A DNA stretch of 63,314 nt, filler included, from Octopus bimaculoides (GCF_001194135.2; 6 parts of 6 records of this genome joined end to end with filler, not necessarily neighbours in it); one strand, 5' to 3'. Positions 17,060-41,050 are shown, counted from the first letter of the whole stretch. Numbers and translations: made by a program. The notes: generated from the sequence alone by a model not told the origin.

Positions 17060-18340
17060 ACATTTCTCTCTCTCACTCATCTCACATTCGCTGACACAGT
17101 TCACTCCCACTCTCACTCTATCTGTTATCCTGTCTAGCCTCTCTCCTACTCTCACTCTTTCTATTGTCTCCCCATCTAACCACCCTCTCCCATTCTCTCT
17201 GCCTGCCAGTCGAATCTCCCTCTCCTACTCTCACTCTATCTGTTTTCCTGTCTAGTCTTTCTCCTACTCTCACTCTTTCTATTGTCTCCCCATCTAACCT
17301 CCCTCTCCCATTCTCTCTGCCTGCCTGTCAAATCTTCCTCTCCCACTCTCACTCAGTCTCTTTGGTCTGCCTATCTAACCCCTCTCTTTCTACCTGTCTG
17401 CCTATCTAATCTCTCTTACGCTCTGTTTAATCTTTCTCTCACTCTCTCTTTCTACCTGTCTGCCTATCTAATCTCTCTTACGCTCTGTTTAATCTTTCTC
17501 TCTCTTGCTACCTGTCTGCCTATCTAATCTCTCTCCTCTGTGTATCAGTCCTATAACTCTCTTTCCCTGTTAACTCTTTCTCTCTCGCTAGCCCTCTATC
17601 TCTTTCTTTTTATCTGTCTGCCTGTCTAATTTTTCTCCACCTCTTTCTCATTCTCATCTTCGCTCTTTCTATCTCTCCTTTTTCTCTGCTGCAACCCTTC
17701 TTTTCTCTTTCAATCTAATCAGCTCTGTTGCTGTCTGTCTCTCTCTTTATCCGTTTGCCTGTCTAATTTTCTCTCTTTCCATTCCTCTGACGCTCTCCCT
17801 ACTTCTCTCACCCTTTCTTTGTAAATATCTCTATCTGTCTAATCTCTCTCCCCACTCTCTGTGTAATTCTCCCTTTTTCTATCTCTTTTTTATTCCGTTG
17901 CTATCCTGACTTACTTCTTTCTTTCCATCTCTCTTTCTTTCTAACCACCTTCATTTGCTTGTGGAATCTCTCCCTCTCTTTATCCTTTTGTTTTCTTTCC
18001 CTGTCTATATCTTCTACTTCATTGTCTTTGTCTATTTAATAAAATCCGTCATTTCTATTAATCTCTTGTCCGTTGATCTAACCAGAGTTCAGTATCTGCT
18101 TATCCAATCTCCCTCTCCATTGATCTAACCAATCCTCTATGTCCTGTCCCACTTATGGTTTCTCTCTGCCTTCTCTTTCTAGCTCTGTTTATTCATGTGT
18201 CCTTTATTCTCTTTTGTTCTTTTTCTATCTCTCAATTAATCTTTCATCACTCCCGTTCACTGTCTTCATTTTATCTCTGTCAACTCCCTCACTCTGGGAA
18301 TCTCTATCCCTTCCAAGCCTTTCTCTTTAGTTCCCAGTTT
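17060..18340. repeat. CT-rich low-complexity tract with an internal ~118-bp tandem duplication
   Basis: tctagc/tctagt...actctcactctttctattgtctccccatctaacc repeated at ~17132 and ~17250. Confidence 0.8.
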
Positions 18341-18855: not shown

Positions 18856-19794
18856 GAAAGATTGATACTGTTAATATTAAGTTTGAACAGAACACCTATA
18901 TATCGACGACAGCAAGAAAAATATGACTGGAGAAGGAATTCCTGAGGGTTGGTAACAAAAAATTAGGTGGTAAACATTAACAAAACACAGTACTCCAGGA
19001 ACCTTTAAAAAAAAACCCCAAAATGGCCAAAATGAATGTGAAGACATACTTGGTCTCCATACTAAACAAAATCTTCTCTGAGGAGTGATCAACAAACTGT
19101 GAAATGGTGCATCAGGAAACTCATATCTCTTCTTTTTTTATACATACCAAAGACATAGAAAGAATTTGCTTACATTCTTCATACTTAAAGCACAGCTGAA
19201 CTTTGTAATATTTAAATGTATTTCAATTCTTCTGATTCAACATTTAATATACTTTGTAGTATATTATGGTTGCATGACAAAGAATATTAATACAAAACAA
19301 TAAAACTTTCAAACAATATAAAATTTGTGTTTGATCATATATTTGAGTATATATATTCTTTCTCACACAAACACACACACATGTATATGGTTCAAAATGA
19401 TGCCAAACACGAGAGAGAAAGGTGAAGGAACAAACACGGTGTAATTGTTTGATACTCAGGAAAATAGGTGACTTGTGTGTCAAGATCAATAATAAACACA
19501 ATGATCAAAGTTGCAATATATATTGATAACAGAGGGTAAAGGTAAAAGAAAGAAAATAAAATAAAATAACTTGGAAAAAAAGATCTACAGTTTAATATAT
19601 ATTTATTTGTGTTGTATGTGTGAATAAATATACATTTATATATGTACACATACACACTCGTATATATATGTATATATATATGTTTGTGTGTATCAAACAC
19701 GTGTATATATATAGAGAGAGATAGATAGATACATCGATACATAGACAGATAGATACATAGATAATATATTAAGTATCCATCATTTTCTCAAATA

Positions 19795-20307
19795 TTAATA
19801 ATAATCCTGTCCCCACTGGGTACTGGATTCCGGGATTTTCAATCCTAGTTTCTTGTGTATATTTAGTGCAAGGAAGTGGGAACGAGAGTTCAAATTTTTG
19901 GTTTTCTCGATTACTTGCTGGTAAGGAGAAACAGCTTTTGTTCCCATGACAACGTGACCTAGTTTAGAGTCTATTTTAGCATCGAGTCGGGCGTGTCGGA
20001 TCAAATTGACAATCCACTGCTCTGCGGCATCGGGTGTCATGTTCAGCTTCTGCGACAGCATGTTGATGCTGATGCACTCGTGGATTCGACAGAAAATCTC
20101 AAAGATGAGGAGACGCGCGTTCTCGATGAACTCGTTGACGAGGTTGCTCAAGAAGAAGTCGTAGCAAAGAACAGATTCACATTCAAGAAGTTTATGCTGG
20201 GCTCCATCGAAATCAAAATTGACATAGAGGCATTCAATAAATTCAGTGATGGGGTCTCTGTAGGAGTAACTCTCTTGTTGGATCACTTTGACCAAATCCT
20301 TGAGAAC
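19795..20307 (-). CDS. EIF3E: eIF3 subunit E (INT6) paralogue A, exon 2 of 2 (170 aa, PCI domain C-terminal half)
   Basis: Acceptor tttatttacAG at 20308-20309; [23 protein letters not shown]...[15 protein letters not shown] matches eIF3e; TAA at 19795-19797. Confidence 0.95.
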
Positions 20308-20906
20308 CTGTAAATAAAAAATAGAGNNNNNNNNNNNNNNNNNNNNNNNNNNNNNNNNNNNNNNNNNNNNNNNNNNNNNNNNNNNNNNNNNNNNNNNNNN
20401 NNNNNNNNNNNNNNNNNNNNNNNNNNNNNNNNNNNNNNNNNNNNNNNNNNNNNNNNNNNNNNNNNNNNNNNNNNNNNNNNNNNNNNNNNNNNNNNNNNNN
20501 NNNNNNNNNNNNNNNNNNNNNNNNNNNNNNNNNNNNNNNNNNNNNNNNNNNNNNNNNNNNNNNNNNNNNNNNNNNNNNNNNNNNNNNNNNNNNNNNNNNN
20601 NNNNNNNNNNNNNNNNNNNNNNNNNNNNNNNNNNNNNNNNNNNNNNNNNNNNNNNNNNNNNNNNNNNNNNNNNNNNNNNNNNNNNNNNNNNNNNNNNNNN
20701 NNNNNNNNNNNNNNNNNNNNNNNNNNNNNNNNNNNNNNNNNNNNNNNNNNNNNNNNNNNNNNNNNNNNNNNNNNNNNNNNNNNNNNNNNNNNNNNNNNNN
20801 NNNNNNNNNNNNNNNNNNNNNNNNNNNNNNNNNNNNNNNNNNNNNNNNNNNNNNNNNNNNNNNNNNNNNNNNNNNNNNNNNNNNNNNNNNNNNNNNNNNN
20901 NNNNNN

Positions 20907-21062
20907 TGCTGGTGTGTTTACGTCCCCGTAACTTAGCGGTTCGGCAAAAGAGACCGATAGAATAAGTACTAGGCTTCCAAAGAATAAGTCCTGGGGTCGA
21001 GTTGCTCGACTAAAGGCGGTGCTCCAGCATGGCCACAGTCAGACTGAAACAAGTAAAAGAGT
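20907..21062 (+). mobile_element. SINE family A, 3' half (5' lost in gap)
   Basis: tgctggtgtgtttacgtccccgtaacttagcggttcggcaaaagagaccgatagaataag...actgaaacaagtaaaaga. Confidence 0.9.
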
Positions 21063-21779
21063 AATAAAGGTGTCTGTGGAGTGCTCAGCCACTTGTACGT
21101 TAATTTCACGAGCAGGCTGTTCCGTTGATCGGATCAACTGGAACCCTCGACGTCCGTAAGCGACGGAGTACCAACAACAACAACAACAACAACATTTGTA
21201 TCTGCAGTCACAAATATCTTAAACTAGATATCCACACTTCTCCTTTAAAACAAAATCTCAATTTTTTCAGAAAGTAATGAGGAAACAAAGTCAAGGAACG
21301 GGGGCGGGGCGACACACGCATCTGTCATTATATCGAATCAGTTTCACTTTCAGCAGAAAGAAGAAAAAAGTGTTAGAAGGGACATAACTCGTGTAGTTAC
21401 TGCTTTCCAAACCTTGTCAGGAGGCGGTGATCCATCAAGCGGAGCACTTGCTTTCTGCCTCTGTTGGTGATATTGATCGGAGCTGCTACAGTTGCAGTGA
21501 CAGATTTACTGCCATGTGCACCTGACAGTGCGGAGATAGCTAAAAGTCAGGTCAGTCACAATCTGTAGTGCACGACAGACAAATTGACTACACAAGCTGC
21601 TCCACATCCGCCCCTCCCGCAAACTACATCACAACCAGAACGAATCGAAACATATGCTGTTTAAACCCAGGTCGATCCCCGTGGAAGAGGCTTTCCTCAA
21701 CTTTATACATCGTGTAATTATTGTTGGGTTGTCAGATAAATTCGTTCGTTTTTCTTCTAAATCCTTTCCAATGTTATAC

Positions 21780-22140
21780 TCTTTTTTACTTGTTTCAGTC
21801 ATTTGACTGCGACCACGCTGGAGCACCACCTTTAGTCGAGCAAATCGACCCCAGGACTTATTCTTTGGATGCCTAGTACTTATTCTATCGGTCTCTTTTT
21901 TGCCGAACCGCTAAGTTACGGGGACGTAAATACGCCAGCATCGGTTGTCAAGCGATGTTGGGGGAACAAACACAGACATACATATATATATACATATATA
22001 CGACAGGCTTCTTTTAGTTTCCGTCTACCAAATCCACTCACAAGGCTTTGGTCGGCCCAAGGCTATAGTAGAAGACACTTGCCCAAGGTGCCACGCAGTG
22101 GGACTGAACCCAGAACCATGTGGTTGGCAAGCAAGCTACT
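21780..22140 (-). mobile_element. SINE family A, near full length
   Basis: Reverse complement of the family-A consensus seen at 57396-57812. Confidence 0.9.
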
Positions 22141-23244
22141 NNNNNNNNNNNNNNNNNNNNNNNNNNNNNNNNNNNNNNNNNNNNNNNNNNNNNNNNNNNN
22201 NNNNNNNNNNNNNNNNNNNNNNNNNNNNNNNNNNNNNNNNNNNNNNNNNNNNNNNNNNNNNNNNNNNNNNNNNNNNNNNNNNNNNNNNNNNNNNNNNNNN
22301 NNNNNNNNNNNTAACACGAAAAATATTTTCATATTAGTATTTTTTTTGTTTTGTTGTATGCTTCCTCTACAACATTTTTTATAGTTTTTTTTTTCAAAAT
22401 ATAATAAATTTTAAACATCTTATGACGATAAAGAGCCAATCTTTTACTTGTTTCAAGGGTTTGGTCGAACAAAGCGACCTTAGTACTTATTTTAAAGCCT
22501 GATACGTATTCTATCGGCCCCTTTTTGTTGAAACGCTATGTTACTGGGACGCAACCAAACCCACATTGGTTATCGAGCGGTTAACGGGACAAAGAAAGAT
22601 ACACACACACACGACGGGCTTCTTTCAGTTTCCGTCTACCAAATTCACGCACAAGGCTTTGGTCATCTCGGGGTTATAGTGTACGACACATGCCCAAGGT
22701 GCAACACAGCGGGACTGAACCCAAATAGACAAACAATGCAGACTTAAATATCAAAAGGATTTAACTGCAGGGTAAATTTGGCTGCTCTTTTTAGCATGTC
22801 AAATGACCATATAGAAGAGGTTCCTTCGTAGAATCTCAGTTGGAATTGGAAAAATGGCCGTAAAGAATCGAAATCAGCTGATTTTTGCTATGAGCTATCT
22901 GAGTGCGGCGGAGGTAAAGAATACGCACACAACAGTTTTCGGCGTAACAAAAACCCGAACCCTTCTTTGAAGTACTCCCAGAGTATTTCAAATTTGTTTC
23001 TCTCAGTAAAGTAGCAGTTTAGACCCAGGTCAGCCCTGATTGAGGGGTGGAGGGAGTGTGTGTGTGTGTGTGTGTGAGCTATAATCAGAGGCATTCCAGC
23101 CGTGGCTATCCCATCTTTTAATTTTTAAAAAATGTCAATGTTTTCTTTCCTTAGTTTAGGGAATTTGTTTGCTATTTCTAGCAGCTCCAGCGATCTCGTG
23201 ATGACTCTCTAAGTCTAAGTAACATCGTCGACTTTATCTTGTAT

Positions 23245-23668
23245 CCGAGAATTTAGTTTCTTTGCTGAACGCTTCCTTTAGGAAGAGTCGATGGCATTGA
23301 GTGCACGGTAATATTGGAGAACGAGGTTGATTTTATCGAGCTTTTCTTTCCTGTCGTCTGCTACTTCCTTTTCTCTTCTGGTAGCTTCGAAAATGGTTTC
23401 GATGGTGACGGAACGTCACTTGGTACGGTCTCGGGCATATGTTTCAAACGATTCAGGTTAAAGTTCAGTAACTTTGAGTGTTGTTTTGAGTTGATACTTG
23501 TATCTTCGAAAAGGGCAAACCCATGGTCTTTCTCTTGAAGTGAGCCCGCTGACGTAGGAACCTCGACTCTTCTATTCTTGCTACATGTCTTAATCATCGA
23601 AGACGATGTTTCATGATCAGCGATTCGATGCTTTGACTGTTGGCGCTTTCCAGGACTTTTTTGGCAAG
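23245..23668 (-). mobile_element. RTE-type LINE 3' coding fragment in the eIF3e-A intron
   Basis: KVLESANSQSIESLIMKHRLR*LRHVARIEESR..., ARDRTK*R and a terminal CTQCHRLF knuckle, typical of the RTE C-terminus. Confidence 0.75.
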
Positions 23669-24685
23669 TCGATTACATCGATCCCACTAGTTAACTGGTA
23701 TCTTTATTTTATCGACTCCGAGAAGATGAAAAGTTGACCTCCGTGGGATTTGAGCTCAGAACGTAAAGACCTAGAAGAAATGCCTCTACGCATTTTGTCC
23801 GACGCGCTAATGGTTTCCCTGGCTTACTACCTTTATTAACGAGAAAATAAAATCAAGTCTGCTTCCAAAAGGTAATATTCTTTGCCAGTGTGTCGAACAA
23901 CTTTAATAAGGGAACTTATCTGGTCCCTTTTCTTAATTTTTCATCAACCTATAAAAAAAAACTATTGGTTAAGATCCGTACTAGTCCTGACCAAAGAAAT
24001 CTACGATTGAAGACTTTCCAGCACTGGTGATCCGATTTTTTCTCTAGACATTGTATCTTAACACATGAACCAAAATGTCCTTCCTTTATTTTTTATTTCT
24101 GAGTTCAGTGGTTTGACTTTCTAGATTATAAAACGAAAGACTTTCAAGTTACGGCCATCACATCTTTTCTCCAAACATTGTATCTTAAAACATTAACCAA
24201 ATATGTCTTTCTATCATTTCAGTTCCGAGTTCAGAGGTTTCACTTTCTGGATCATAAAACGAAAGATCGATTTTTTTTTTTTTTTTTTGCTTAAAAAATA
24301 ATACCGTGTAACTTGAGGTAGATCTTTAACTATTATTTCCAACAGGTGAAAATGACTAAATAAATAAAGACTCCATCGTTTGCAAGGTTATATGGTAACG
24401 AGCATATTTCTTGACTTCACAACTTGACTGTGTACAATAAAATATAGATCACAAGTCACCACATGTATGAGAAAATCTCTCAACAAAGGCAGCAAAATTT
24501 ATCCCCAATTTTCCCCTACCGTCTTAAAAATTATTGGATATATATACTGATAACTCGATCCAGAATATATTTATCAGGTAAAAAAAATAATTGGATTTAT
24601 ATGAAAGGTGGAAATATCCAGAGACAGCACAAATCCGTCAAAGAAAGATGTGCATTGAAGAATAGGGAATACCTACACACAGAAC

Positions 24686-25007
24686 ACCCCCTCCCCCACA
24701 CACATCGACTTTGTTTCCTCATAATTTTCAGAAAAATAGATATTTTTGAATGAAATTTTTACCAAATACGTTTCAAATGGTGTAAATTACGATTATATCG
24801 GAATTTAATGGTAAAAAGAAAATAGTTGATGGTCGCACACGTATACATACTGACAAACACATTTTTATTTTCTAAATTTCACAAGTATTTTGTGTGTGTA
24901 TGATCTCGAAAGGTAAAAGACTTTCTCACCTTCCCGAGCGTCAAACTAATACACCTGCTTGTTGTTTATACACCTGTCTTCGGGTTTTGTTTTCTGTAAA
25001 TTTCAAC

Positions 25008-25047
<40 letters not shown>

Positions 25048-25220
25048 TTTTCAGTATGTATGTGTGTTCGTCCACTAATTAAAAATATATATATATGAAT
25101 TAATTTCCGATATAATGCTAATCTACACCTTCTGAGAGGTATTTCTAGAAAATTTCATTAAAAAGTATCCCAATTTTTCTAAAAGTTATGAGGAAACAAA
25201 GTCAAGTGGGAGGGGCACAC
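24686..25220. mobile_element. MITE-like element with ~80-bp imperfect inverted arms and internal (TA)n; single arms also at ~21215-21320 and ~39845-40050
   Basis: gactttgtttcctcataa.tttt.agaaaaat at ~24704 versus its reverse complement at ~25185. Confidence 0.65.
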
Positions 25221-26239
25221 TTTTGTAGCTATGTCACAGTGGGAACATCCAGAGACAGTAGGAATCTGTGGAGAGATAGCTCTGCAAAGAAGAATGATGC
25301 CTTAAATATCGCAAAATCATAAGTGTCATAGACATCATAGGAAAAAGTTACCTCACCAAGGTATGATATCTAATTAATAAGCTGAAACTGTTATTACTCA
25401 TTAGTGTATATGTAAATGTGTGTTTAGATGTAGACTTATTTAGTTACCGCGATTTCTTTTGGTCAGATACACAAGAGATCCATTTGGGTGCCTGAAGACG
25501 AGGGGGAAAAATCGAATGGAATCTGGTATTGTGCGGCTAATATATTTTAACGATCGTGCACTTAACGACACCAATTTAAACATCACAAGACATTGAAAAA
25601 CCATCTCACCATTCCCAGTCGTTGCATAATCAATCAGTTCAACCCCTTTAATTGATAATTAAGCAAATTTACGATCAGACAATTCAACTACGTCCATGCC
25701 ATTTAATTTTTCACTCGTAGTGTCTCTAGAACTACGTTATCCATTGTATCCATCATTATTTGATATGATAGGAGGCAATTTGAACGAGATTTGGCTGCTA
25801 TTTCTAGAAAATTTCTAACGACTACAGAGGCGCCTTAAATTGCTCGTAGCATCACTTACCGTATTTTTAGTGAGATGAATACATTTCCTAGAATGTAGCA
25901 TATTCAATCTATTTCTAATGTAATTAGAATGTTTCCCCCTTCTAAGCTGTTATCCAATGTATCCCCTCTCATTTAAGATCGCAGCAGGGAGTTGAGGAAG
26001 ATGTGACTGTTATTTCTAGCAAGTCTACCGACTGCAGATGTGCTTTGAATGGCTCGTGTCACTTCCCGTATTTTTAGTGAGATGAACACATTTCCTAGAA
26101 TGTAACATATTCAATCTACTTCTACTTCAACTAAAACGTCTTTTCATGAGTAAGTCATATATAATATGATATAAATTAATTAGAGCGACCATAGCTTCGT
26201 TAAAATGAAATAAAAAAAGAATTAAGCGTGACAACTCAC

Positions 26240-27055
26240 CGATCTTCGGCGACTCTTGTTGATAATAACAGCTGTGGTTAGGTATCGAAGAATGTGAGGA
26301 CATACAGTTTGTACCGTATTGAGATAAGGTGGTTGATAAAGAAGTAGATCTATGACGAGGTCCAGACCATCTCGATGCTTGAAGAAGACAAACAAGGACC
26401 AGTGAACGAACCAGGTTCTCTGCTGTAAGGTCTGCAAGGCTGGCCAGAAAGAGGCGTTGTTGTCGATATATTCTCTCAACCTGTTTAATTCTTCGAGAGC
26501 CGTGTCGAAGTTTTCGAGAAGAATTTCAGAAGCCAGGATACCCCACAGTGAATTGAGGTAGAGCTTGTCATTAGTTGGCAGTAGGGTACTGACAAAGTAG
26601 AGATATTGGCTAGTGAATTCATAGTTGCCACATTCGAACTGGTATTTGGCATAATTGTACATGTCTTCTGTAATATTTTCGCTGATGCCGTGACGAGTGA
26701 CAAGGTACTCATATAAATGACTACCATCTCGCACAGTTTCAATTTGGTTTATAACCTCAGGGAGATTCATCAATTTTGAAATGTTCTCAACACGAGATTC
26801 CAATATTTCAAGATGTTCCAATACGTTTTCTCTTTCTTCTTGAAAACTTTTGGTTAGATCTTGCGAAGGATACATCTTGTCATGTAGATTTTTGGCGTAA
26901 TCTACCATCTTAGTCTTCTTAATTAGCTCCAGTTTCCCACGCAGTATTTGTTTTTCATCGAATATCTTCTGGGAATGTACAAATTCCAAGAGTTTCAGCA
27001 TTAAATGCGGATCTAAATACTGTGAAAACCGGCTGAGCAGATCGAAGTTCGACAT
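26240..27055 (-). CDS. EIF3E: eIF3 subunit E (INT6) paralogue A, exon 1 of 2 (272 aa)
   Basis: ATG at 27055; YAKYQFECGNY, LWGILASEILL, LQQRTWFVHWSLFVFF and CPHILRYLTTAVI are eIF3e motifs; phase-0 donor TCG|GTGAGT at 26239. The spliced product is 442 aa. Confidence 0.95.
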
Positions 27056-27983
27056 GTTTGCTCTACCTCGCTAATGGAAAGGAATTATAGCCGGGGTAGT
27101 TTACAAAACCCGGAATCACGCACAGACTCCGGTGAAGCAACAGACCACTAACAATTATATATGTATTTCCTTTCCTGAACGAGAAAAAAATTTTTAAAGC
27201 TTTATCAAAACCTCATAGATATAAAATAAATCACAAATATAACAAGGAATATATATAAAAATATTTTTTCATACATAGGGATAGATTTTAGCTCGATACA
27301 AATGAAAACAATTAAAACGGAAAACGAAACAACTAGTAGGTTCTCCTTAATTACATGGCTAATGTCATATGGGGGATGATAGTCACGTGTCTCTACCACC
27401 GGTAAGCATGGTCTTTCGACTCAATCTTCGTATTAAATAAATATTCCTTTAATAAACCCGACTGTTAATTAACGTAATTTTAACGATGTCAAGAATCATT
27501 AAATGAGTCGTTGCTTAGCTCCAAGTCAACTCAGAATAAGCACATCTGTGATCGAAGACACTCCAGTCGTGCCCATCCCATCTTATTTTTTTACTTCGGC
27601 ATAATACATTACGAATTACATACATACATATAAATTGTGTCCCTTTTTTTAATGCGAATTTACAAATTTAGGTTATCTACCGCGGTGCTATCCTAGTTCG
27701 CGACTGCTTTTATAAGCAGCTGATGTACTGATTTCCCCATTCAGTGGAGAAGGAAGCCGGGTATGTTTTCTCTGGTGTCAACGAACTGTGAAACGGTCCG
27801 CCAAGAGCCCCCTCCCTCATTTTACTGTATCATAGTAATATAGAAAAAACGTGTACCGAAAGATGACCAAAACGTGTTTGTATTTCTATTTAATCAACAG
27901 CGAAGCTTTTTATAATAGTTTCATTTATTTTGTTTCTTCTGATTTACGCTGTTGTACATAATTCGTATGTTCTTTCTTTTTAA

Positions 27984-28220
27984 GACGCGAGAATGTGGAG
28001 TAATGGATTGGCAACGCGAGAATGTAAGTAGAGGGTAATTTGGCTGCTATTTCTAGCACATCAAGCGACCATGTAGGTTTCGCCTACGCCATAGTGGAGT
28101 AATCGATTGGCGACGCGAGAATGTAAGTAGCGGGTAATTTGGCTGCTATTTCTAGCACACCAAGCGACCATGTAGGTTTCACCTACGCCGTAGTGGAAGT
28201 GGAGAGTAATCGATTGGCGG
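27984..28220. repeat. 99-bp tandem duplication (~2.2 copies), CpG-rich
   Basis: ggctgctatttctagcaca recurs at 28042 and 28141, with flanks matching. Confidence 0.9.
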
Positions 28221-28515
28221 ATCATCTGTGCTGCAACTCTGCTTCGATTTTCAGAAAAAAAGAAAAAAAAAACACATACCCTCTCTCTCTCTCTCCCACA
28301 CAAACTTGTACTTCTGACCCCCTCTCTTTATATTGCTCTCTCATACAGGAAGAATTTCCAATATTTTAAGGGAAAATCGAAACAAGAGTTTTAGATATTT
28401 ATGAACGAGATTTCAAATGTGCATATGTTCTTATATATTCATTCCTTGTCATGAACCAAAAAAAAAAAAAAAAATACAACCTTTTGCCACCATTTTTTAA
28501 GATAAAACTGGCTGT

Positions 28516-28915
28516 GTGGTTAAGAAACTTGCTGCCTAACTATGTGGCCTTGTATTCAGTCCCACGGCATGGCACCTTGAGCAAGTGGCTTCTGCTATAA
28601 GCACAGGGCTGACCAAAGCATTGTGAGTAGATTTGGTAGACAGAGATGCAAAAATGCCCATCTGATATATGTATGCGTGTGTGATTATGTTTGCATATTT
28701 GTGTATGCTCTTGTTTTGACACCATGTGATGGTTATAAAAGTCTTTCATGAAAACGTTTTTGGTCACGAGAAAAAAAATTACCTTGCTTGGGAACAGATG
28801 AGGGTAGGCAACAGGAAAGGTATCCAACTGTAGAAAATACATCTCAGCAAATTCTAACCCATACAAGGAAAAATGGATGTTAAATGATGAAGTTGATAAT
28901 GATGGAATCAGAATT
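28516..28915 (+). mobile_element. SINE family-A head with RTE-like 3' tail (diverged)
   Basis: ctggctgtgtggtt...ggcaccttgagcaagtg head; tail ends ggatgttaaatgatga. Confidence 0.6.
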
Positions 28916-28970
28916 GATAAAAAATGTATCAACCCTCACTTGAATTAAATCTAAAATGTAATATAATATA

Positions 28971-29350
28971 GGCGCAGGAGTGGCTGTGTGGTAAGTAGCT
29001 TGCTTACCAACCACATGGTTCCAGGTTCATTCCCACTGCGTGGCATCTTGGGCAAGTGTATTCTACTATAGCCTCGGGCCGACCAAAGCCTTGTGAGTGG
29101 ATTTGGTAGACGGAAACTGAAAGAAGCCTGTCTTATATATATATATGTATGTGTGTGTATCTGTGGTGCTGGTGCCATGGAAACAAGCACCCGGTACACT
29201 CTGTAAAATGGTTGGCATTAAGAAGGGCATCCAGCTGTTGAAACCATGCTAAAACATACAATAGAATTTGATACAGCTCACCAGATCTTGTCAAACTATA
29301 GAACCTATGTCAGTATGGTAAATGGGCATTAAATGATGGTGACGATGATG
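28971..29350 (+). mobile_element. SINE family-A head plus microsatellite plus RTE-like 3' tail
   Basis: ggcgcaggagtggctgtgtggtaagtagcttgc head; tail gaagggcatccagctg...gcattaaatgatggtgacgatgatg matches the 3' end of the RTE at 30870-31295. Confidence 0.7.
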
Positions 29351-29489
29351 GTTGTGGTAGCAAAGATGATTGTGTAAGCATAAACTTTCCTTTCATATAT
29401 TTCATATTACACTCACTCGATTTGTGCTCCGACGCTGCTGTAAACTCACAGGAAAAAGGGGGTTTTGCATCTGATTGTATATATTTTAT

Positions 29490-29850
29490 TTAATGCTTAA
29501 CATCCAGATTATTCTTCCAAATATAATATTTTTTTTATTCATGTTGTTTTGAATGAATCAAGCATTACTTTGTAGCTCTGAAATTTTTGACGATATGATC
29601 GTATATTTTTAGAATGCCATTCAAGGGTAGATATGACAGTCTGGATCTGGCTGGTTTCAACATAAAGCAGGTAGAATATCTGGACCAGATAGGGTCAGCT
29701 TAACCCCTTAGCATTCAGACTATTTTGAATTAATCACGCATTATCTCACAGCTTTGAGATTTTAATGAAGTGATTGCAGGGTTGGTGTGTGAGGCTGGAT
29801 CTGGCCAGTTTAAATGCTGGATATGGCCGGTCTAAATGCTAAAGGAGTAA
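29490..29850 (+). mobile_element. Two tandem copies of a TTAA-type (piggyBac-like) MITE
   Basis: ttaacccctta...aaatgctaaaggagtaa ends; an internal block is repeated at 29490-29699. Confidence 0.55.
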
Positions 29851-30145
29851 AAAGATTATTAAGCCGCTTTAGCTCAGGGTTCCCCAACCAGGGGTACTCA
29901 CACCCCTTGACTGTGCAAGATAGTATTCCAGGGGGTGTGAGAACACATAAAAAGTTTTTAGGGATGCAAGGCATTACAAAGGTTGCTTTCGGTATTCAGT
30001 CTTTTAGTTTTAATTTTGATGTTCTTTAGATTTTCGAAAAGGTAAACAAAATGTGTTCCATGTTCCTGATTTTCTTTTATAAGAGATTTATATTATTTAC
30101 ATTATTTACATTTGACGGATATTCGTCCTCATCTTGTTTGTTGTT

Positions 30146-30191
30146 AACACAACGTTTCAGCTGATATACCCTCCAGCCTTCGTCAGGTGTC
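30146..30191 (-). ncRNA. Minimal type I hammerhead ribozyme motif (Penelope/retrozyme type)
   Basis: 5'-GACAC CUGACGA AG GCUG GAGGGUAUAU CAGC U GAAAC GUU GUGUU-3': stem I GACAC/GUGUU, CUGANGA core, stem II, GAAAC, palindromic AACGUU stem III, GUU cleavage triplet. Activity not demonstrated. Confidence 0.7.
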
Positions 30192-30400
30192 TTGGGGAAG
30201 GATAGAAAAATAATAGATTTATAAGCCTTAAAATTCACCCCATAATTTCCCACGAGCATATGGCGTAGTGGTTAAGAGCACGGGCTACTAATCCCAAGGT
30301 TCCGAGTTCGATTCACGGCAGCGACCTGATTAATAATAGTAATAATAATAATAATAGTAACATCGATAGGAATGAGAACCCAGGTTCGAAATTTCCCCAA

Positions 30401-30443
30401 GACTCCTGATGAAGGCTGGAGGGTATATCAGCCGAAACGTGTT
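30401..30443 (+). ncRNA. Hammerhead ribozyme motif, sense copy, with a 3-nt deletion next to the cleavage site
   Basis: CTGATGA (30406-30412) A GGCTG...CAGCC GAAAC (30434-30438); GAAACGTGTTAAC versus GAAACGTTGTGTTAAC in the other arm. Confidence 0.6.
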
Positions 30444-30869
30444 AACAACAAACAAGATGAGGACGAATATCCGTCAAATGTAAATAATGTAAATAATTCC
30501 TCATCTCTTAAATATAGAACTGAAGAGATTTATAGTTTATTATTTTTTATACCATTTTACTTGAGAGCCTCTTCATAAAAACAGCTTTATATATATAATT
30601 TTCAAATATGAAATAGAAAGCAGTGCTAGTGTAATAACCATTATAAACCACATGTACTTAATACAAATGCTTTGTGTTTGCTGGTAGGCCCTGAAATGGG
30701 CGTAGTTACAAAGCGAGCTTCTTAATCAAACAGCCATGCTAGCACCTAAGTCCCCTTTTATAAATTTCTGTTGGCATAGTTGCATCATTAAGAAGCTGGC
30801 TTTGGAATTACATGATTTGGGGTTCAATTTCACTGCATGGAATCTTGAGTGAAAACTGAGGACAGTTGC

Positions 30870-31295
30870 TTCAAGAACTGCCAATCTCTAATTGTAATGG
30901 GAACATGTGGAAGGGGTAAACCTAGGAAAATGTGGGATGAAGTGGTAGGAAAGGATCTACAAATGTTAGGACACACAGAAGGGATAAACAGGGAACTGTG
31001 ACTCCTGGAGGTTTGCCGTGCTTGAAAAGACACATCAAAAGCCTATTAAAATCATGGTTGCCCTTGCATACAGGCTTGTTCTTTGCAACCCTCTCCAGCT
31101 GAGCATCCCTAATCTTGCAGGCTCGTTGGTGCTGGTGCCATGTAAAAAGCACCCATGCTGGTCACCCAGTACACTCTGCAAAGCGGTTAGCGTTAGGAAG
31201 GGCATAGAAACCATGCCAAAACACACATGGGGCCTGAACAGCCCTTCAGCTCCTGTCGAACCATGCCAGCCTAGGGACGTTAAATGATGATGATT
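30870..31295 (+). mobile_element. RTE-type LINE 3' end with 3' UTR and (TGA)n tail
   Basis: GTCGRGKPRKMWDEVVGKDLQMLG is like RTE GRPRKTW..V..DL; ends ggacgttaaatgatgatgat. Confidence 0.75.
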
Positions 31296-31695
31296 AATGA
31301 GTCTGAGTTTGCAGTTGTCTGAAGGCGTATCGGTGAAATTTGATATATGGTAACTATCGAAAACCCCTCAAAGGGACCAGTCCTGTTTTTGAGAGGTGGA
31401 ATTTGTTGTGATGCCCTGTTTAAACCACCACCTGGTTCTTGGATGCCATTAGCAGGGTCCACTTTATTGTGAGTATAGGTCTCTAGTTTGAGAATAAGTC
31501 TCAGACAGTCTGAAAAGGGGTTATACTTACCTGAGCCCTTTTCTCCCTATGGACCATAAGCCAATAACAACTTTTCTAATTTTGTCCTTTTGGATCCCCT
31601 CTGTTCAGCTCTACTTCAGTATCCCTCCTCTAGCTGTTTTTAGGGTGTCCTCTCCTCTGCCTCCCTTGTTAGTTCCGGGTAATGTTTTCATGAAG

Positions 31696-32215
31696 GAAAG
31701 CACATGGCTCAGTAGTTACAGTATCAGGCTCACAATCATGAGGTTGTGAGTTCAATTCCCGGATCAGACTGTGCAAGATGCTTTATTTCACATTGCTTAT
31801 GGTGGTGGTGGTGGTGGGTTGTCTGACTCTTATATTGTTGGATTCTTGTAAGAATTAATTTTGTTGCTTACTTTTCATTTTTTTCTTGATATGTATTTTA
31901 ATTATTTTTTTTATTTTGTATAGATAAGAGGTAGTAGTTCAATTCTTAGACTGGGCTGAGTGTTGTGTTCTTGAGCAAGACACTTTATTTCACGTTGCTC
32001 CAGTTCACTCAGCTGTAGAAATGAGTTGTGACTTCACTGGTGCCAAGCTGTATCGGCCCCTTTGCCTTTCCCTTGGATAACATCGGTCGCGTGGAGAGGG
32101 GAGGCAAGTGTATACATGGGCGACTGCTGATCTTCCATAAACAACCTTGCCCAGACTTTCTAGGTGCAATCTCATGGTCATTCAGGACAAAAGGCGGCCT
32201 TTACCCTTTCCTAGG
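31696..32215 (+). mobile_element. SINE family C (tRNA-like head; ttgagcaagacact core), interrupted
   Basis: catggctcagtagtta...gagttcaattccc head; tgttcttgagcaagacactttatttcac.ttgctcc core shared with 59925-60180. Confidence 0.65.
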
Positions 32216-33444
32216 TCTTGTTGGTTTTTGAATTGTAACTGATGCCTCTGTATGCATTTTTTTCTAGGTAGGCATGTTGGCCCCATGTAAACCTATTTTT
32301 ACTTTTGAGAACAAGTGATCCATATTAGTCTGACCCCTACCTCTTTGATCTATCAAACATGGGACAGACAAAATTCTGCTAAGCAATTCACCTAACATGC
32401 TAATGACTCTGTCATCTCTCCATCTTGGGGAATATTAACTTAGTTGCAGACAAGTGAGGGTTTGTGACAGGAAGGGCATCTAACAATTGAAAATCTGCCT
32501 CAACAAATCTTGTCTGGCCCAAGCTGGCATGGAAAAGTGGACATTAAAAATGATGATTGTTGTATTGGTGCTGTTGACATTACTGCTTTGAAGGATGTAT
32601 TTGCTCATGGTAATTGTTTATTAAGTGAAAGTGACATCCAGTGTGTCTAGATTCCATGGAAAGGACCAAGGTGGATGACCAGATGACAGGTGTTAACACT
32701 GCTGAGTAAGGGTAGCTTTAATTCAAGGGCAGACAGAAGAGAAACAATGATGGGGTGGTTATGTTCATGCCTATAGAACTCCTGTCCATCACTCACTCAC
32801 ATTTCACCTCCAACCATCAGGTACTCTCCCCTCACATTCTTATAACTGACCCCTGCCTCATCTCCTGATCTCCTGCCTGCATCATCTCTTGCTTCCTGAA
32901 GGTTTTGCTTTGGTACTACATCACCACTAGCTTATCTTTTTCCCCTTATACTCTCACAAACCCAGGGTAGCCATGTATCTTCAGCTTGTCCTTGATATAA
33001 AATTCACCTTTCAACCCCCTCAAATACACCACCACAATTTAGTTTCCTTTTCCCTTTCTTGTCTTCCATGTTACTTAGCAAATCCCACCAGTGTTGGTGC
33101 CACACACACAACAAAAAAAAGCATGCAGTATACACAGCAAAAATGGTTGGTGTGAGGAAGAGCATCCAGCTGTAGAAAAGTAACCATGCTGAAGCGGACT
33201 TGGGGCAAGCATGATGCAGCCCTGTAGCTCACCAGACCCTATCGTATTGCCCCTACCAACCCATGCCAGCATGGAAAACAGGCACAAAATGACGATGAAC
33301 CTTAGCATTAACATTATAAGAATAAACTAGCTACTGTTAAAAATCAAAATGTGATTGTATACTCAATTTCCTTTGTTTGAAATTGAAGTAAAAACACTGA
33401 AATTAAAAATAAATTCAAAAGCCCAATGTATTTATTTATTTATT

Positions 33445-33479
<35 letters not shown>

Positions 33480-33512
33480 CATAAATTTACTGTACATTTG
33501 TAAATTTTTATA

Positions 33513-33799
33513 TTAATCCTGTCCCCACTGAGTGCCAGATTCAGGGAATTTCAATCCTAGTTTCTTATGGATATTTAGTGCAAGGAAGTGGGAACGAGAG
33601 TGCAAGTCTTTGGTTTTCTGGATTACTTGCTGGTAAGGGGAAATGGCTTTTGTTCCCATGACAACGTGACCTAGTTTAGAGTCTATTTTAGCATCGAGTC
33701 GGGCGTGTCGGATCAAATTGACAATCCACTGCTCTGCGGCATCGGGTGTCATGTTCAGCTTCTGCGACAGCATGTTGATGCTGATGCACTCGTGGATTC
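33513..33799 (-). CDS. EIF3E: eIF3 subunit E (INT6) paralogue B, exon 2 (5' ~220 bp predicted to lie in the N gap 33800-34347)
   Basis: [48 protein letters not shown]...QWGQD*; AATAAA motifs ~70 bp downstream. Confidence 0.9.
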
Positions 33800-34509
33800 N
33801 NNNNNNNNNNNNNNNNNNNNNNNNNNNNNNNNNNNNNNNNNNNNNNNNNNNNNNNNNNNNNNNNNNNNNNNNNNNNNNNNNNNNNNNNNNNNNNNNNNNN
33901 NNNNNNNNNNNNNNNNNNNNNNNNNNNNNNNNNNNNNNNNNNNNNNNNNNNNNNNNNNNNNNNNNNNNNNNNNNNNNNNNNNNNNNNNNNNNNNNNNNNN
34001 NNNNNNNNNNNNNNNNNNNNNNNNNNNNNNNNNNNNNNNNNNNNNNNNNNNNNNNNNNNNNNNNNNNNNNNNNNNNNNNNNNNNNNNNNNNNNNNNNNNN
34101 NNNNNNNNNNNNNNNNNNNNNNNNNNNNNNNNNNNNNNNNNNNNNNNNNNNNNNNNNNNNNNNNNNNNNNNNNNNNNNNNNNNNNNNNNNNNNNNNNNNN
34201 NNNNNNNNNNNNNNNNNNNNNNNNNNNNNNNNNNNNNNNNNNNNNNNNNNNNNNNNNNNNNNNNNNNNNNNNNNNNNNNNNNNNNNNNNNNNNNNNNNNN
34301 NNNNNNNNNNNNNNNNNNNNNNNNNNNNNNNNNNNNNNNNNNNNNNNGCTTGCAAGTTACTTGGGGAGCCTCACTAGTGCTAGTGTCACAAAAATGCACC
34401 CAGTACACTTTGTAAAGTGCTTAGCATCAGGAAGGACTTCCAGCCATTGGAATTATGCCAAAGCGAAAATTGGAGCTCAATACAGTCCTTTGACTTGTCA
34501 GATCTGTCA

Positions 34510-35556
34510 AACTGTCCAAATAATCCTTTCTATTATAGGCACAAAGCCTGAAATTTGAGGGAGGGGGATAAGCGATCACATAAACCCCAGTATTTTACTG
34601 GTATTTAATTTATCAACCCCGAAAGGATGAAAGGCAGAGTCGACCTTGGCGGAATTTGAACTCATAATGTTGCGACAGGCGAAATACCGCTAAGCATTTC
34701 GTCCAGTGTGTTAGCAATTCTGCCAGCTCACTGCCTTAATAATAATAATAATAATAATAATAATATACTACTATAGGCACAAGGCATGGAATTTCAGGGG
34801 AGGGTGTGAGTCATTTATATTGACCCAATGTTCAACTGGTACTGATTTTATCAACCCCGAAGGGATGGAAGGTAGAGTGGACCTCAGCAGAATTTGAACT
34901 CAGAGTGCCAAGACGGACGAAATACTGCTAAGTATTTTGCCCAGCGTGCTAACGATTCTGCCAGCTCACTGCCCTAATAATAATCCTTTCGACAACAGGC
35001 ATAAGTCCTGAAATTTAGGTGGGGGGGGGGAGGTAATCGATAACATCGACCCACGAAAGGATGAAAAGCTATGTCGACCTTGGCGGAATTTGAACTCACA
35101 GCGATGCGACAGGCGAAATACCGCTAAGCATTTTGCTCGGGGCGCTTACGGTTCTGCCAGCTCACCGCTTTAATAAATAATAATAATAATAATCCTTTCT
35201 ACTTAAAGCCTGAAATTTGGTGGGAGGGGACTAGTCGGTTATATCGACCCCCAATATTTCACTGGTACTTAATTTATCGACCCCGAAAGGATGAAAGGCA
35301 AAGTCGACCTCGGCGGAATTTGAACTCAGAACGTAGATAGAGACGAAATGCCGCTAAGCATTTTGCTCGCCATGCTAATAATTCCACCAGTTCGCCGCCT
35401 TAAATAATAACAAGGATTTTAAAGTTTGATACAAGGACAGCAACTTTAGGGAAATGGCGAAGTCGATTACGTCAACCCCAATGCACAACTGGTACTTATT
35501 TCATCGACCCCCAAGAGGATAAAAAAAAAAGCAAAGTCGACCCTGGTGGCATTTGA
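34510..35556 (-). mobile_element. Array of about five head-to-tail SINE family-B copies separated by (TAA)n, in the eIF3e-B intron
   Basis: gaaaggatgaaaggcaaagtcgacct.ggcggaatttgaactca recurs at ~34621, 34858, 35055, 35285 and 35515. Confidence 0.9.
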
Positions 35557-36287
35557 ATAAGATCCAATTTTAAAAAAAAGGGGGTGGGGTGTCAAAATCC
35601 CCCTCATAGAATCCAGGTGAGAACAACCAAGGGCAACAGGAGCCACTGACAGATTCCTTTAGTGAATTTATTTTGTTGCGTTTCCTTCAATGCAAACCCA
35701 GTTGAAATAGAAGAACGGTCTGAAATAGACATGAGCAACCCCTTTTTCAAGAAGCGGGCCGCATGAGACAGGGATCATCATTAGGTGAGCCACACTATAA
35801 AAAAAAAAAAGAGAAATTTTAAAGTAATTTTTTTTGTTTGGTATGCCATATTGAGAGAATCCCAGGGTCTAAACTAGAATTGACGAGATTTGAAACTTAT
35901 GGGAAGGGTGAAAGAAAAAACATGGCAACGAGGACGAATTTGTGCTTCAGGCAGGCCTAACAGAGCACTTCGTATTCTTATACCGAATATGGTTCGTCGA
36001 TTCATTTATAGTATTCTCTGAACCATTTACAGTGTTTCGTAATTGTTTGTAAACAAAATAAATGCCTATACAATAAATATCGGCAATCCTAGCTTTTAGC
36101 GTACCATTTTAATTCTTAGCATAAGGTAAAATAGGTCGAAATATTGACACACGTGCATAGGTGAGATAGTTAAGAGAGAGACAGATTGTGTATTGATGGA
36201 GTATACGTACTTTAGTTAATTAATAGGAGTTAGTATCAGACACATGTTAGTTTATAATAGTATATATAAATAATATAATCAACTCAC

Positions 36288-37103
36288 CGATCTCCGGCGA
36301 CTCTTGTTGATAATAACAGCTGTGGTCAGGTATCGAAGGATGTGAGGACAAACAGTTTGGATTGTATTCAGGTATGGAGGTTGATAAAGAAATAAATCTA
36401 CGAGTAGATCAAGGCCATCCAAATTGTTAAAAAACACAAACAAGGACCAGTGAACGAACCAGGTTCTTTGCTGTAAGGTCTGCAAGGCGGGCCAAAAAGC
36501 TGCATTGGTGTCGATATATTCCCTCAGCCTGTTTAGTTCCTCCAGAGCGGCATCGAAGTTTTGCAGAAGTATTTCTGATGCCAGGATACCCCATAATGTG
36601 TTGAGGTAGAATTTGTCGTTGGTTGGTAGAAGAATACGAACGAAATAGAGATATTGGCTGGTGAATTCGTAGTTGCCACATTCGAACTGGAACTTGGCGT
36701 AGTTGTACATATCTTCTGTAATATTCTTACTGATATCATGACGAGTGGTGAGATATTCATACAACTGGCTTCCATCTCTGAAGTTACTGATGGTTTTCAT
36801 TACTTCAGGATCATTCATGACTTCGGCGATTTTCTCAACCCGTTCCTTGAGTTTTTTGTCTTCGGCCAAGACACGGTTTAAGTTCTCGTGGTAACTTTTG
36901 GGGATGTCTTGCAACGGATACAGATCGTGATGAAGGGTTATGGCATAACGGGCCATTTTAGTTTTGCTGATAATCTCTAGTTTCCCTCGAATTAATTCTT
37001 TATTATCGTACACGTTGTTGTCGGACAGGAATTCCATGAATGGTAAAATGAGATGCCGGTCGAAATACTGTGACAAACGGTTAGTTAAATCAAATACTGC
37101 CAT
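36288..37103 (-). CDS. EIF3E: eIF3 subunit E (INT6) paralogue B, exon 1 of 2 (272 aa)
   Basis: Kozak-like gcaccATGG; DRHL motif and eIF3e core motifs; phase-0 donor TCG|GTGAGT at 36287, the same position as in copy A. Confidence 0.95.
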
Positions 37104-38254
37104 GGTGCTGTTGTTGTTGTTGTTGTTATGATTATTATTGTTATTATTAAGTGCTTTGTTTGTTTGATCAAATAAGGATGAAGAAAACTACAATCACATT
37201 GGAGAGGAAGAACAAAAGATTTCAAACTACTAGTCTCACAGAATCCTCAAGCTTTTTAAATATTCCGTCTTTTTTTTCTTTAAAAATATTCGTCTTTAAC
37301 AAAATAACTTCCGAGCCAAATGGTTTCCTGGCTAAATAAGTAAATCCTGGAGATATTTCAAGATGAAACTCGTTAAACTTTTCCAAGACGTGACACGATG
37401 ACATGAGAAGTCAAGCGCTTGTTGTAAGCTTATACAAAAACCGAAACGGTTACCAACACCGCTTAGTCATGTCTCACGAAGATATAAAAACAATTACAAT
37501 ATAATATTTATTGACGACATTTATTCTAAATAAACATAACTATTTAAATTTCGAATAAAGAAAATAAAATCTATTATACAGTTTTAAATTATATATATTA
37601 GACGTTATATTGATTTCGTTTCGTTTTTGCAAACACTGAATAAAGTTTATACTTTATACGTGCTGGGTTACATGTAAAACGCAAACATGCGCTTCCTGAA
37701 ACTTACATATAATAGTACATTTTTTTTCCGTATCCTTAATTTTTATTTATTCTAATTGCAGTGGAATCAAGTATATTAAATAAAAACATTTAAAGATTAA
37801 ATAAAAATAGATTCTTATTTTCTATTTATTGAAGTTTATATTGCATTATATCCGTTCCTTCTCTTCCTTCATGGTATATACGAAATTTCTTCGTGAACCG
37901 TGAATAAGACGGACAAATTATGGTTGTTTATCGAAATAAACACATAAATATAAAGACTTCCAGGAAAAATACAGTAAATTTAATAATAACGTATTTCATT
38001 TGGAAACAATTTAATAAAAAAACTATCAAACAATTTCGATGTTGTCTATTTTAATATCTGCACTTACGACATACAGCGAAGTTGATTAGTCGATGTTAAA
38101 CTATTTTTATCGGTTTTTTTTTTTTTTGTTTAACTCTATTTTGGAAATAAAAAATAACTAATATTTTATTCATAATAATATAGTAAATAAATATTTTGTT
38201 TAATCAATTGCTAATGTATTTTTGAAATATTGAAGCATTATATTATTATTTTTA

Positions 38255-38395: not shown

Positions 38396-38462
38396 TATAT
38401 ATTTATATGTATATCTATAAATATCTATCTATCTATATAATACATACATACACACATATTCG

Positions 38463-38830
38463 TTTACCTGTTTCAGTCATTTGACTGCGGCCATGCTGAA
38501 GCACCGCCTTTAGTCGAACAAATCGACCCAAGGACTTATTATTTGTAAGCCTAGTACTTATTCTATTGGTTTCTTTTTGCCGAACCGCTAGTTCACAGGG
38601 ACGTAAATACACCAACATCGGTTGTCAAGCGATGGTGGGAGGACAAATAGACACTAATGCATACATACATCTCTCTCTCTCTCTCTTTATATATATATAT
38701 ATTTCAGTTTCCATATACCAAATCCACTCACAAGGCTTTGATAGGTCTAAGGCTATGATAAATGACACTTGCCCAAGGTCTCACGTGGTGAGACTGAACC
38801 CAGAACCATGTGGTTGGGAAGCAAGCTTCT
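38463..38830 (-). mobile_element. SINE family A
   Basis: Reverse complement of the family-A consensus. Confidence 0.9.
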
Positions 38831-38957
38831 TTATTTCATCAGATTAGCCATAAAGGGTTTACATTGATAGAAGCATTTGCGGGCTGGACAAAACAGAAAT
38901 GAGATGAATGATAAATAAAATATATGATATTGATGAGCGAAGGCAAACGACACCTGC

Positions 38958-39083
38958 CGATCACATGGTTCCGGGTTCAGTCCCACTGCGTGGCACATTG
39001 GGCAAGTGTCTTCTACTATAGCCTCGGGCCGACCAAAGCCTTGTGAGTGGATTTGGTAGACGGAAACTGAAAGAAGCCGGTCG

Positions 39084-39136
<53 letters not shown>

Positions 39137-39335
39137 GTTTGTGTGTCTGAGTTTGTCCCCACCAACATCGCTTGACAACCGATGCTGGTGTGTTTAGGTC
39201 CCCGTAACTTAGCGGTTCGGCAAAAAGAGACCGATAGAATAAGTACTAGGCTTACAAAAGAATAAGTCCTGGGGTCGATTTGATTCGACTAAAGGCGGTG
39301 CTCCAGCATGGCCACAGTCAAATGACTGAAATAAA
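38958..39335 (+). mobile_element. SINE family A (5' truncated)
   Basis: cacatggttccgggttcagtcccactgcgtggc...ggtgctccagcatggccacagtcaaatgactgaaa. Confidence 0.9.
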
Positions 39336-40833: not shown

Positions 40834-41050
40834 TCTTATATTTTATTGTTTATGTTATGATTTTATTTACTCCATGTCTCCACATGGGGATTAACACATA
40901 CTTTAAGAAATTATTATTTCTTATATTTAATTGTTTATGTTATGATTTTATTTACTCCATGTACCCACATGGGGATTAACACATACTTTAAGAAATTATT
41001 ATTTCTTATATTTAATTGTTTATGTTATGATTTTATTTACTCCATGTACC
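40834..41050. repeat. 85-bp tandem repeat (~2.5 copies, probably continuing into the gap)
   Basis: tcttatattt.attgtttatg at 40834, 40919 and 41004; the same start is also at ~40059, before the gap. Confidence 0.9.

Follow-up and report, generated by a model that had tools for sequence, protein, structure and literature searches.

Two neighboring genes for eIF3e (INT6), a core translation factor subunit and near-universal single-copy marker, are found on the minus strand between positions 19795 and 37103 of the Octopus bimaculoides DNA analyzed here (63,314 nucleotides (nt) in full length, hereafter the window). We refer to the two genes as A and B. Taken as a whole, the results make it probable that a cDNA-derived version of eIF3e replaced the ancestral gene and gained a new intron, that this version was duplicated in octopods, that the duplicates were partly homogenized by gene conversion, and that both persist as constrained, co-expressed genes, of which A is the major one. 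Public annotation already contains both genes; new here are the intron turnover, the octopod duplication, the mosaic conversion and a corrected RefSeq model. A search of the literature gave no relevant paper on octopus or cephalopod eIF3e.

Gene structures and the chimeric RefSeq isoform

The piece of the window that carries the pair is from chromosome CM046622.1 of the O. bimaculoides assembly GCA_001194135.2 (0 mismatches over 20,572 nt). A occupies 37103-33513 and B 27055-19795. Their parts, and the gaps that interrupt them, are as follows:

37104..37300, minus strand: 5' untranslated region (UTR) of A; the RNA contig of sample X1 extends at least 111 nt further upstream
36288..37103, minus strand: exon 1 of A; 816 nt, 272 codons, ATG at 37103-37101, ends with ...SRRRS
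33800..36287, minus strand: intron of A; donor GTGAGTTG at 36287-36280, 3' end and acceptor within the gap 33800-34347
33513..33799, minus strand: visible 3' part of A exon 2; 287 nt, 94 codons plus TAA at 33515-33513
27056..27100, minus strand: short 5' UTR and start region of B, with a TATAA-like box and a pyrimidine tract
26240..27055, minus strand: exon 1 of B; 816 nt, ATG at 27055-27053, ends with ...SRRRS
20308..26239, minus strand: intron of B; donor GTGAGTTG, acceptor tttacag followed by GTTCTCAAGG; contains two N gaps and interspersed repeats
19795..20307, minus strand: exon 2 of B; 513 nt, VLKD...GQDYY plus TAA at 19797-19795; PCI and EIF3E_C domains
19790..20087, minus strand: visible conversion tract in B; its counterpart in A is 33502-33799 (94% identity, identical run of at least 154 nt)
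33800-34347 (in A), 20327-20906 and 22141-22311 (both in the B intron): the three N gaps across the pair

The 816-nt coding exon 1 that an earlier note on this DNA had described for each copy was confirmed, as was its phase-0 donor after RRRS: both exons end with ...AAG AGT CGC CG(G/A) AGA TCG, followed by GTGAGTTG. The common junction between RRRS and VLKD, which the same note had placed in both genes, can be read from the sequence in B; in A the acceptor lies within a gap and is invisible, and the junction is given by RNA contigs and by O. sinensis. Against O. sinensis A (XP_029649713.1), the identity of A is 99.6% for exon 1 and 100% for the visible part of exon 2 (residues 347-440), and the 600 nt upstream are 90.6% conserved. 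A 1600-nt RNA contig of sample X1 (depth 709), which maps to 37300..36286 from contig position 112 onward, joins this segment to 33799..33544 with 218 letters between. The aligner took the first two letters of A exon 2, GT, into the intron GT, so that the piece within the gap 33800-34347 is the first 220 nt of the exon. Exon 2 of A is thus 220 + 287 = 507 nt long and in frame, giving a coding sequence (CDS) of 1323 nt and a product of 440 aa. Contigs of four runs extend past 33799 in frame into the hidden part, and the gap-free O. sinensis ortholog of A has exons of 816 and 507 nt with the same RRRS-VLKD junction. The B product has 442 aa and is identical to XP_014777262.1; 37 raw junction reads join its two exons, as do an 826-nt contig of X25 and 217-nt contigs of X10 and X26. 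RNA contigs of B end at 27067-27100, and many X46 molecules have one of their ends at 27060/27061.

By their sequences, A and B appear as clear members of the eIF3e/INT6 family. Residues 1-438 of B align colinearly to residues 1-438 of human eIF3e (E=3.3e-173), and B matches the Pfam domains eIF3_N (PF09440, 120.6 bits), PCI (PF01399, 57.9 bits, E=1.2e-15) and EIF3E_C (PF21357, 42.2 bits, E=5.4e-11). Exon 1 of A matches eIF3_N (122.8 bits, E=1.6e-35); its PCI/C-terminal part is partly in the gap, and the O. sinensis A ortholog, which is 100% identical over the visible part, has all three domains. Like the eIF3e of known structures (PDB 6ZMW, 5A5T), the octopod proteins thus combine three Pfam domains at a similar length (440-442 aa, vs. 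445 aa in human), and residues Y286, Q283, L208, W170 and G171, which contact eIF3c/eIF3d in the core, are kept in A and B. The octopod proteins are, however, unusually diverged, with 60-64% identity to other molluscs vs. 79-80% for the other cephalopod sequence described below, and their genes differ in being present as two copies rather than one, with 2 exons rather than 13 and an intron at a non-ancestral site.

RefSeq models the O. bimaculoides locus as a single gene that gives rise to isoforms X1 (XP_014777262.1), which is B, and X2 (XP_014777263.1, P0001), which consists exactly of A exon 1 and B exon 2. The model implied, i.e., two alternative first exons that share B exon 2, is suggested by X2 itself and would fit the location of A upstream of B on the same strand, but it is very improbable given that A has an exon 2, a stop codon and a 3' end of its own at 33799-33513, to which an RNA contig connects A exon 1. 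A second junction contig from X10/X26 carries the end of A exon 1 together with a part of exon 2 that is absent from B, and the junction contigs are of the A1-A2 and B1-B2 types only. All of the reads that cross the 5' edge of B exon 2 (8 + 18 + 11 = 37/37) carry B exon 1 (diagnostic ...GATCTTCGG..., agreement 1.0), and 0/37 carry A exon 1, in spite of its 4-15-fold higher abundance in the runs concerned. Two separate genes are annotated in O. sinensis (440 and 442 aa) as well as in Argonauta hians, in which the convergent orientation of the genes makes a shared exon impossible, while the O. vulgaris annotation contains a fused model of A, B and heparanase. The X2 chimera is best explained by the assembly gap in A exon 2, and the break of the assembler at this exon is probably explained by its conversion-homogenized sequence. 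Owing to the gap 33800-34347, the real 440-aa product of A is missing from RefSeq.

That the pair is an assembly or haplotype duplication is extremely improbable. Such an artefact could be suspected from the gaps at or near exon 2 in both copies and from a 1.2-kb head-to-tail repeat in O. sinensis, which may itself be an artefact. Exon 1 is, however, only 71% identical between the copies at the protein level and 46-67% at the nucleotide level in its 5' part, orthologous A and B pairs are conserved in four species, and each copy is transcribed with copy-specific sequence. These observations confirmed the view of the earlier note that A and B are two real, diverged paralogues, and a haplotype or assembly duplicate was refuted by the exon-1 divergence together with the presence of both copies in O. 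sinensis, O. vulgaris and A. hians. The O. sinensis repeat (CM016880.1, locus L005, 20027-21240 vs. 21212-22425; 99.3% identical) spans B exon 2 and its acceptor and contains exon copies that are identical to each other; it reflects either an artefact of long-read assembly or a duplication that happened very recently. In O. bimaculoides, the corresponding place is taken by the gap 20327-20906, which starts 19 nt upstream of the B acceptor.

Intron turnover and the octopod duplication

Gene structures were obtained by exact spliced mapping of annotated proteins onto genomic loci. In the sampled lophotrochozoans, i.e., the gastropods Gigantopelta aegis and Haliotis rubra and the brachiopod Lingula anatina, eIF3e is split into 13 exons by 12 introns whose positions and phases are the same in all three, in agreement with the expectation of the earlier note that the gene is normally multi-exon. 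All six octopod genes (A and B of O. bimaculoides, O. sinensis and A. hians) have two exons and the same junction. None of the 12 ancestral positions is occupied in the octopod genes (0/12), and none of the 12 introns of Gigantopelta, Haliotis and Lingula is found at the octopod RRRS-VLKD site. Therefore, all of the ancestral introns have been lost and one has been gained. The nearest ancestral intron, a phase-0 intron between KVIQQ and ESYTY, is 33 nt (11 codons) downstream of the octopod one. Intron sliding was rejected as the source of this offset, because the 11 conserved codons are upstream of the intron in the outgroups and downstream of it in cephalopods, and moving splice sites cannot shift conserved codons across an intron. 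The comparison of positions indicates that the single octopod intron is not a retained ancestral one and occupies a new position.

The closest non-octopod protein, an eIF3e of 440 aa encoded by a Logan transcript (P0143, L001), is 67-69% identical to A and B and 79-80% identical to other molluscs and has the cephalopod-type motifs WFVHWSLF, SRSH and ...TQWGQD in common with A and B. Its cluster mates P0140, P0142 and P0145 contain 272 eIF3e codons followed by read-through (RRRQ-VSKKK..., RRRQ-VKKKL...). Genomic-type contigs from five runs (L010-L014; two sequence types that are 97.7% alike) contain ~870-1370 nt of upstream DNA, an unbroken 816-nt exon 1, CAG followed by GTAAGT or GTAAAA, and then AT-rich sequence, and the L001 mRNA is colinear with L010 up to the donor (100% over 1139 nt). 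This second cephalopod lineage is apparently single-copy and, from the derived motifs and the intron in common, probably decapodiform. Given its unbroken exon 1 and its donor at the same site, the two-exon architecture predates the A/B duplication.

A and B both occur in O. sinensis, O. vulgaris and Argonauta. The neighbor-joining (NJ) tree of residues 1-240 (300 bootstraps, A and B from three octopod species) had the topology (single-copy cephalopod, (A clade, B clade)), with the octopod clade and both paralogue clades supported at 100%; the octopod stem and the A and B branches were all long. This topology places the duplication after the split from the single-copy lineage and before the Octopus-Argonauta split. 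The order proposed in the earlier note, an intron-stripped, single-intron gene first and its tandem duplication afterward, was thus borne out.

No multi-exon parent or third eIF3e was found among the best protein matches in the annotated proteomes of O. bimaculoides, O. sinensis, O. vulgaris and Argonauta, and A and B appear to be the only eIF3e genes in these genomes rather than extras beside a canonical gene. We propose that in an ancestor of coleoid cephalopods the 13-exon eIF3e would have been replaced by a version derived from a processed cDNA, either as a retrocopy that outlived its parent or by in-situ recombination with cDNA. The stripped gene would then have gained a new phase-0 intron between codons 272 and 273, i.e., between RRR(S or Q) and VLKD, and its duplication in the octopod stem lineage would have given rise to A and B. 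Orphan retrogenes, which are retrocopies that have replaced their parents, were found to be under strong purifying selection and broadly rather than testis-specifically expressed (PMC3548309; Ciomborowska et al., 2013). The octopod pair resembles them in its lack of parental introns and of a detected parent, its strong purifying selection and its broad expression; it differs in the new intron inside the CDS and the later duplication, and in-situ, cDNA-mediated intron loss is equally possible.

Gene conversion, constraint and expression

The protein identity between A and B is 51-53% for residues 1-130, 88-89% for residues 131-272 and 89-94% for exon 2, and the same sharp switch is found at the nucleotide level. 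In sliding windows over the first 400 nt, A and B are 46-67% identical vs. 81-92% for Octopus-Argonauta orthologs; from about nt 780 to the stop codon, the within-species A/B identity of 88-100% exceeds that of the orthologs (77-90%). Synonymous sites follow the same pattern. The synonymous divergence (pS) of exon 2 is 0.15-0.31 between A and B within species vs. 0.75-0.80 between Octopus and Argonauta orthologs, whereas for residues 1-130 it is 0.73-0.80 between A and B vs. 0.51-0.68 between orthologs. The longest identical runs between A and B are at least 154 nt in O. bimaculoides, 137 nt in O. sinensis and 101 nt in Argonauta. Since the 3' third is closer within species than between orthologs, gene conversion has been recurrent in each lineage, and it is gene conversion, not selection alone, that has kept the 3' thirds of A and B similar. 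Within the window, the homology between the two genes comprises 26232-26730 vs. 36280-36778 (83%) and 19790-20087 vs. 33502-33799 (94%). No non-coding A/B homology that could mark the borders of the duplication was found within the window beyond the coding parts, and the A and B introns have only interspersed repeats in common. In Argonauta, the first ~30 nt of the A and B introns are nearly identical, and conversion of the 3' third has continued despite the inversion of B.

This pattern is that of mosaic paralogues under partial conversion, in which a similarly sharp switch along the gene includes synonymous sites; in octopods, however, conversion persists in the inverted Argonauta copies and stops before the domain that distinguishes the paralogues. 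The region from about CDS nt 780 to the stop codon, which comprises the last part of exon 1 together with the PCI/C-terminal exon 2, would have been repeatedly homogenized, while the first ~130 codons, which encode the eIF3_N helical arm, would have diverged about equally in both copies. Some paralogue-specific residues persist in exon 2 nonetheless (QKLRECEAVFC, VIQKTK and KFP in A; VIEKTK and KIP in B at the last two of these sites).

A and B are each under strong purifying selection. The ratio of nonsynonymous to synonymous substitutions (dN/dS) is 0.005 for A and 0.031 for B between O. bimaculoides and O. sinensis, and 0.010 and 0.023, respectively, between Octopus and Argonauta; for the N-terminal 130 codons, the Octopus-Argonauta values are 0.022 (A) and 0.046 (B). 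We also surveyed the positions that are invariant in 12 non-octopod animals. Within residues 1-130, A and B both retain 26 of them; a further 10 are altered in A alone and 10 in B alone, 9 have the same replacement in both copies and 7 have different ones, while residues 131-442 contain 23 shared vs. 11 private changes. With 10 changes private to each copy, the divergence is symmetric and concentrated in the eIF3_N arm, and A is therefore not simply the canonical copy.

The tissue labels of the RNA samples are coded, and contig depth is a crude measure of expression. Contigs or reads of B were detected in 11/11 RNA samples (X1, X3, X7-X10, X24-X26, X45 and X46), with RNA contigs of B exon 1 in 8 runs and raw reads in 3 runs. 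A exceeded B in all six samples in which both were measured, with A:B from about 1:1 to 15:1. The contig depths for A and B were 709 and 228 in X1, 16 and 7.7 in X10, and 95 and 92 in X26; the raw-read depths were ~90-110 for A in three runs, and ~6-12 (X24), 5 (X45) and 20-28 (X46) for B. These correspond to A:B of about 1:1 in X26, 3:1 in X1, 4:1 in X46, 10:1 in X24 and 15:1 in X45. Both introns are efficiently removed, as the depth is ~0 past both donors (at the A donor, immediately below 36288). The two genes are transcribed and spliced separately, each having a promoter, an exon 2, a stop codon and a 3' UTR of its own, and they are co-expressed, with A as the major one. High depth does occur inside the A intron, at 34448-35400, where internal repeats (34530-34746, 34768-34984 and 35045-35410) reach an RNA depth of up to ~79,000 in all RNA runs, with many back-joints; this signal is repeat-derived rather than intron retention.

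Several points weigh against the history and division of labor proposed here. The absence of a parent gene was judged from annotated proteomes and not from a whole-genome search, and retroposition and in-situ recombination with cDNA are indistinguishable from these data; poly(A) and target-site traces would be long gone. The NJ grouping of the long A and B branches could be inflated by long-branch attraction. The lineage of the single-copy sequence was deduced from its motifs and intron, as is consequently the dating to a coleoid ancestor, and its genomic contigs cover exon 1, the donor and some of the sequence on either side. Expression was gauged from crude contig depths under hidden tissue labels, and any functional specialization of A and B is read from sequence.

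Surroundings of the pair and possible functions

In Octopus, the gene order is HDAC(-), A(+), B(+), heparanase(+). In Argonauta hians (BAAFZT010000065.1, 27076733-27094912; L004/L009), B is inverted relative to A and the two genes are convergent, with their 3' ends 6.4 kb apart, so the same-strand tandem order given in the earlier note holds for Octopus but not for Argonauta. The histone deacetylase gene upstream on the opposite strand is conserved in Octopus and Argonauta (L002, 1-1948; L004, 1-7374), and the heparanase gene (Glyco_hydro_79n) is found downstream on the same strand in Octopus (L005, 28026-31148; L006, 20186-27261).

Upstream of B, the motif TTCCGG..GTTTTGTA..GCTA(T/C)A..TTTCC resembles, by eye and weakly, the region upstream of the single-copy cephalopod gene; the corresponding sequences are TTCCGGGTTTTGTAAA...GGCTATAATTCCTTTCC in B and GTTCCGGCTCCGTTTTGTATTT...GCTACATTCTCTTCCCTTCC in the single-copy gene (about 1290-1372 of L010, with a TOP-like pyrimidine tract). 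The region upstream of A does not show this resemblance. BLAST of the upstream regions detected conservation of the B region for Octopus-Argonauta only. B may occupy the ancestral promoter, although the A transcript is more abundant.

An interspersed repeat of ~150-370 nt (80-94% identity, multiple copies on both strands) is found at 20907-22140, 28993-29158 and 38457-39331, where it flanks assembly gaps, shows very high RNA and DNA contig depth and accounts for spurious ORFs (e.g., ...IYQIHSQGFGRPKAIVEDTCPRCHAVGLNPEPCGWQAS). This repeat is probably a SINE-type element that is abundant in octopus. Tandem repeats with 92-100% identity occur at 17104-17535, 27995-28197, 40834-41052 and 41657-41807 (periods of 118/62, 99, 85 and 35 nt), and the CT-rich array at 17104-17535 gives rise to two overlapping 81-aa "ORFs". 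A functional RNA, such as a snoRNA, that could account for the conservation of the intron was looked for and not found. At the gathering threshold, the Rfam matches across the window and the four octopod loci came to two tRNA-like ones, both outside the eIF3e genes.

In the human 43S complex, the extreme N-terminus of eIF3d docks on helices 1-3 of eIF3e, where its contacts include H12, R16 and Y32 (PMC7780240). In 3/3 octopods, B has the replacements R16P and Y32F, while A keeps R16 and Y32, which are also kept in all outgroups except Gigantopelta (H at position 32). A has private arm changes of its own, e.g., NMVDFAMDV to KMARYAITL. In the simplest model of their function, both proteins would be expected to enter the PCI/MPN core of eIF3 via their near-identical PCI/C-terminal module and to present different N-terminal arms, which would yield two eIF3 variants that differ in eIF3d docking and, in part, in partner or mRNA preferences. 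We put forward as a tentative possibility that octopods have two alternative eIF3 holo-complexes with a common PCI module, kept identical by conversion, whose arms differ in docking eIF3d and perhaps eIF4G or other factors, such that the A:B ratio, with its ~15-fold range among the samples, tunes mRNA-selective translation.

Functional equivalence of A and B, with both kept for dosage or robustness and the N-terminal divergence being neutral drift, is a real alternative but an unlikely one, even though the two are co-expressed and the N-terminal third is the least conserved part elsewhere, too (69% between the single-copy cephalopod and Gigantopelta vs. 89% for exon 2). Against drift are the low dN/dS of the N-terminal 130 codons since the Octopus-Argonauta split and the survival of paralogue-specific exon-2 residues in the face of gene conversion; such conserved paralogue-specific N-termini and residues argue for selection on the differences. 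The earlier note had suggested specialized eIF3 complexes, for example germline- or tissue-restricted ones. A housekeeping A beside a restricted B would be in keeping with the varying excess of A wherever both were measured and with the loss of two conserved eIF3d-contact residues in B. It is nevertheless quite unlikely given that B transcripts were found in every RNA sample, from several studies, and that the divergence from the ancestral state is symmetric; some tissue enrichment may still be present under the coded labels.

Paralogues of eIF3 subunits are found in other animals, including eif3ea/eif3eb of teleosts, the eif3e homeologues of Xenopus laevis and eIF3d1/d2, eIF3f1/f2 and eIF3g1/g2 of Drosophila. 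The teleost eif3ea/eb and the Drosophila eIF3d, eIF3f and eIF3g pairs are whole-genome or tissue-biased duplicates. Like these animals, octopods have more than one gene for a normally single-copy subunit, so that alternative complexes are possible. The octopod pair, however, is an old local DNA duplication that predates the Octopus-Argonauta split, its divergence is confined to the N-terminal arm while the rest evolves in concert, and neither copy is obviously tissue-restricted.

The eIF3e of cephalopods is a clean, datable case of complete intron turnover in an essential gene, and phylogenomic and expression studies that treat eIF3e as single-copy are affected in octopods. The pair is also a natural experiment, in which the PCI part is kept identical by conversion and the eIF3d-docking arm is held apart by selection, and it points to the part of eIF3e whose variation matters. 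If two eIF3 complexes do exist, they would add a lineage-specific level of translational control in a group whose post-transcriptional regulation is already known to be unusual.

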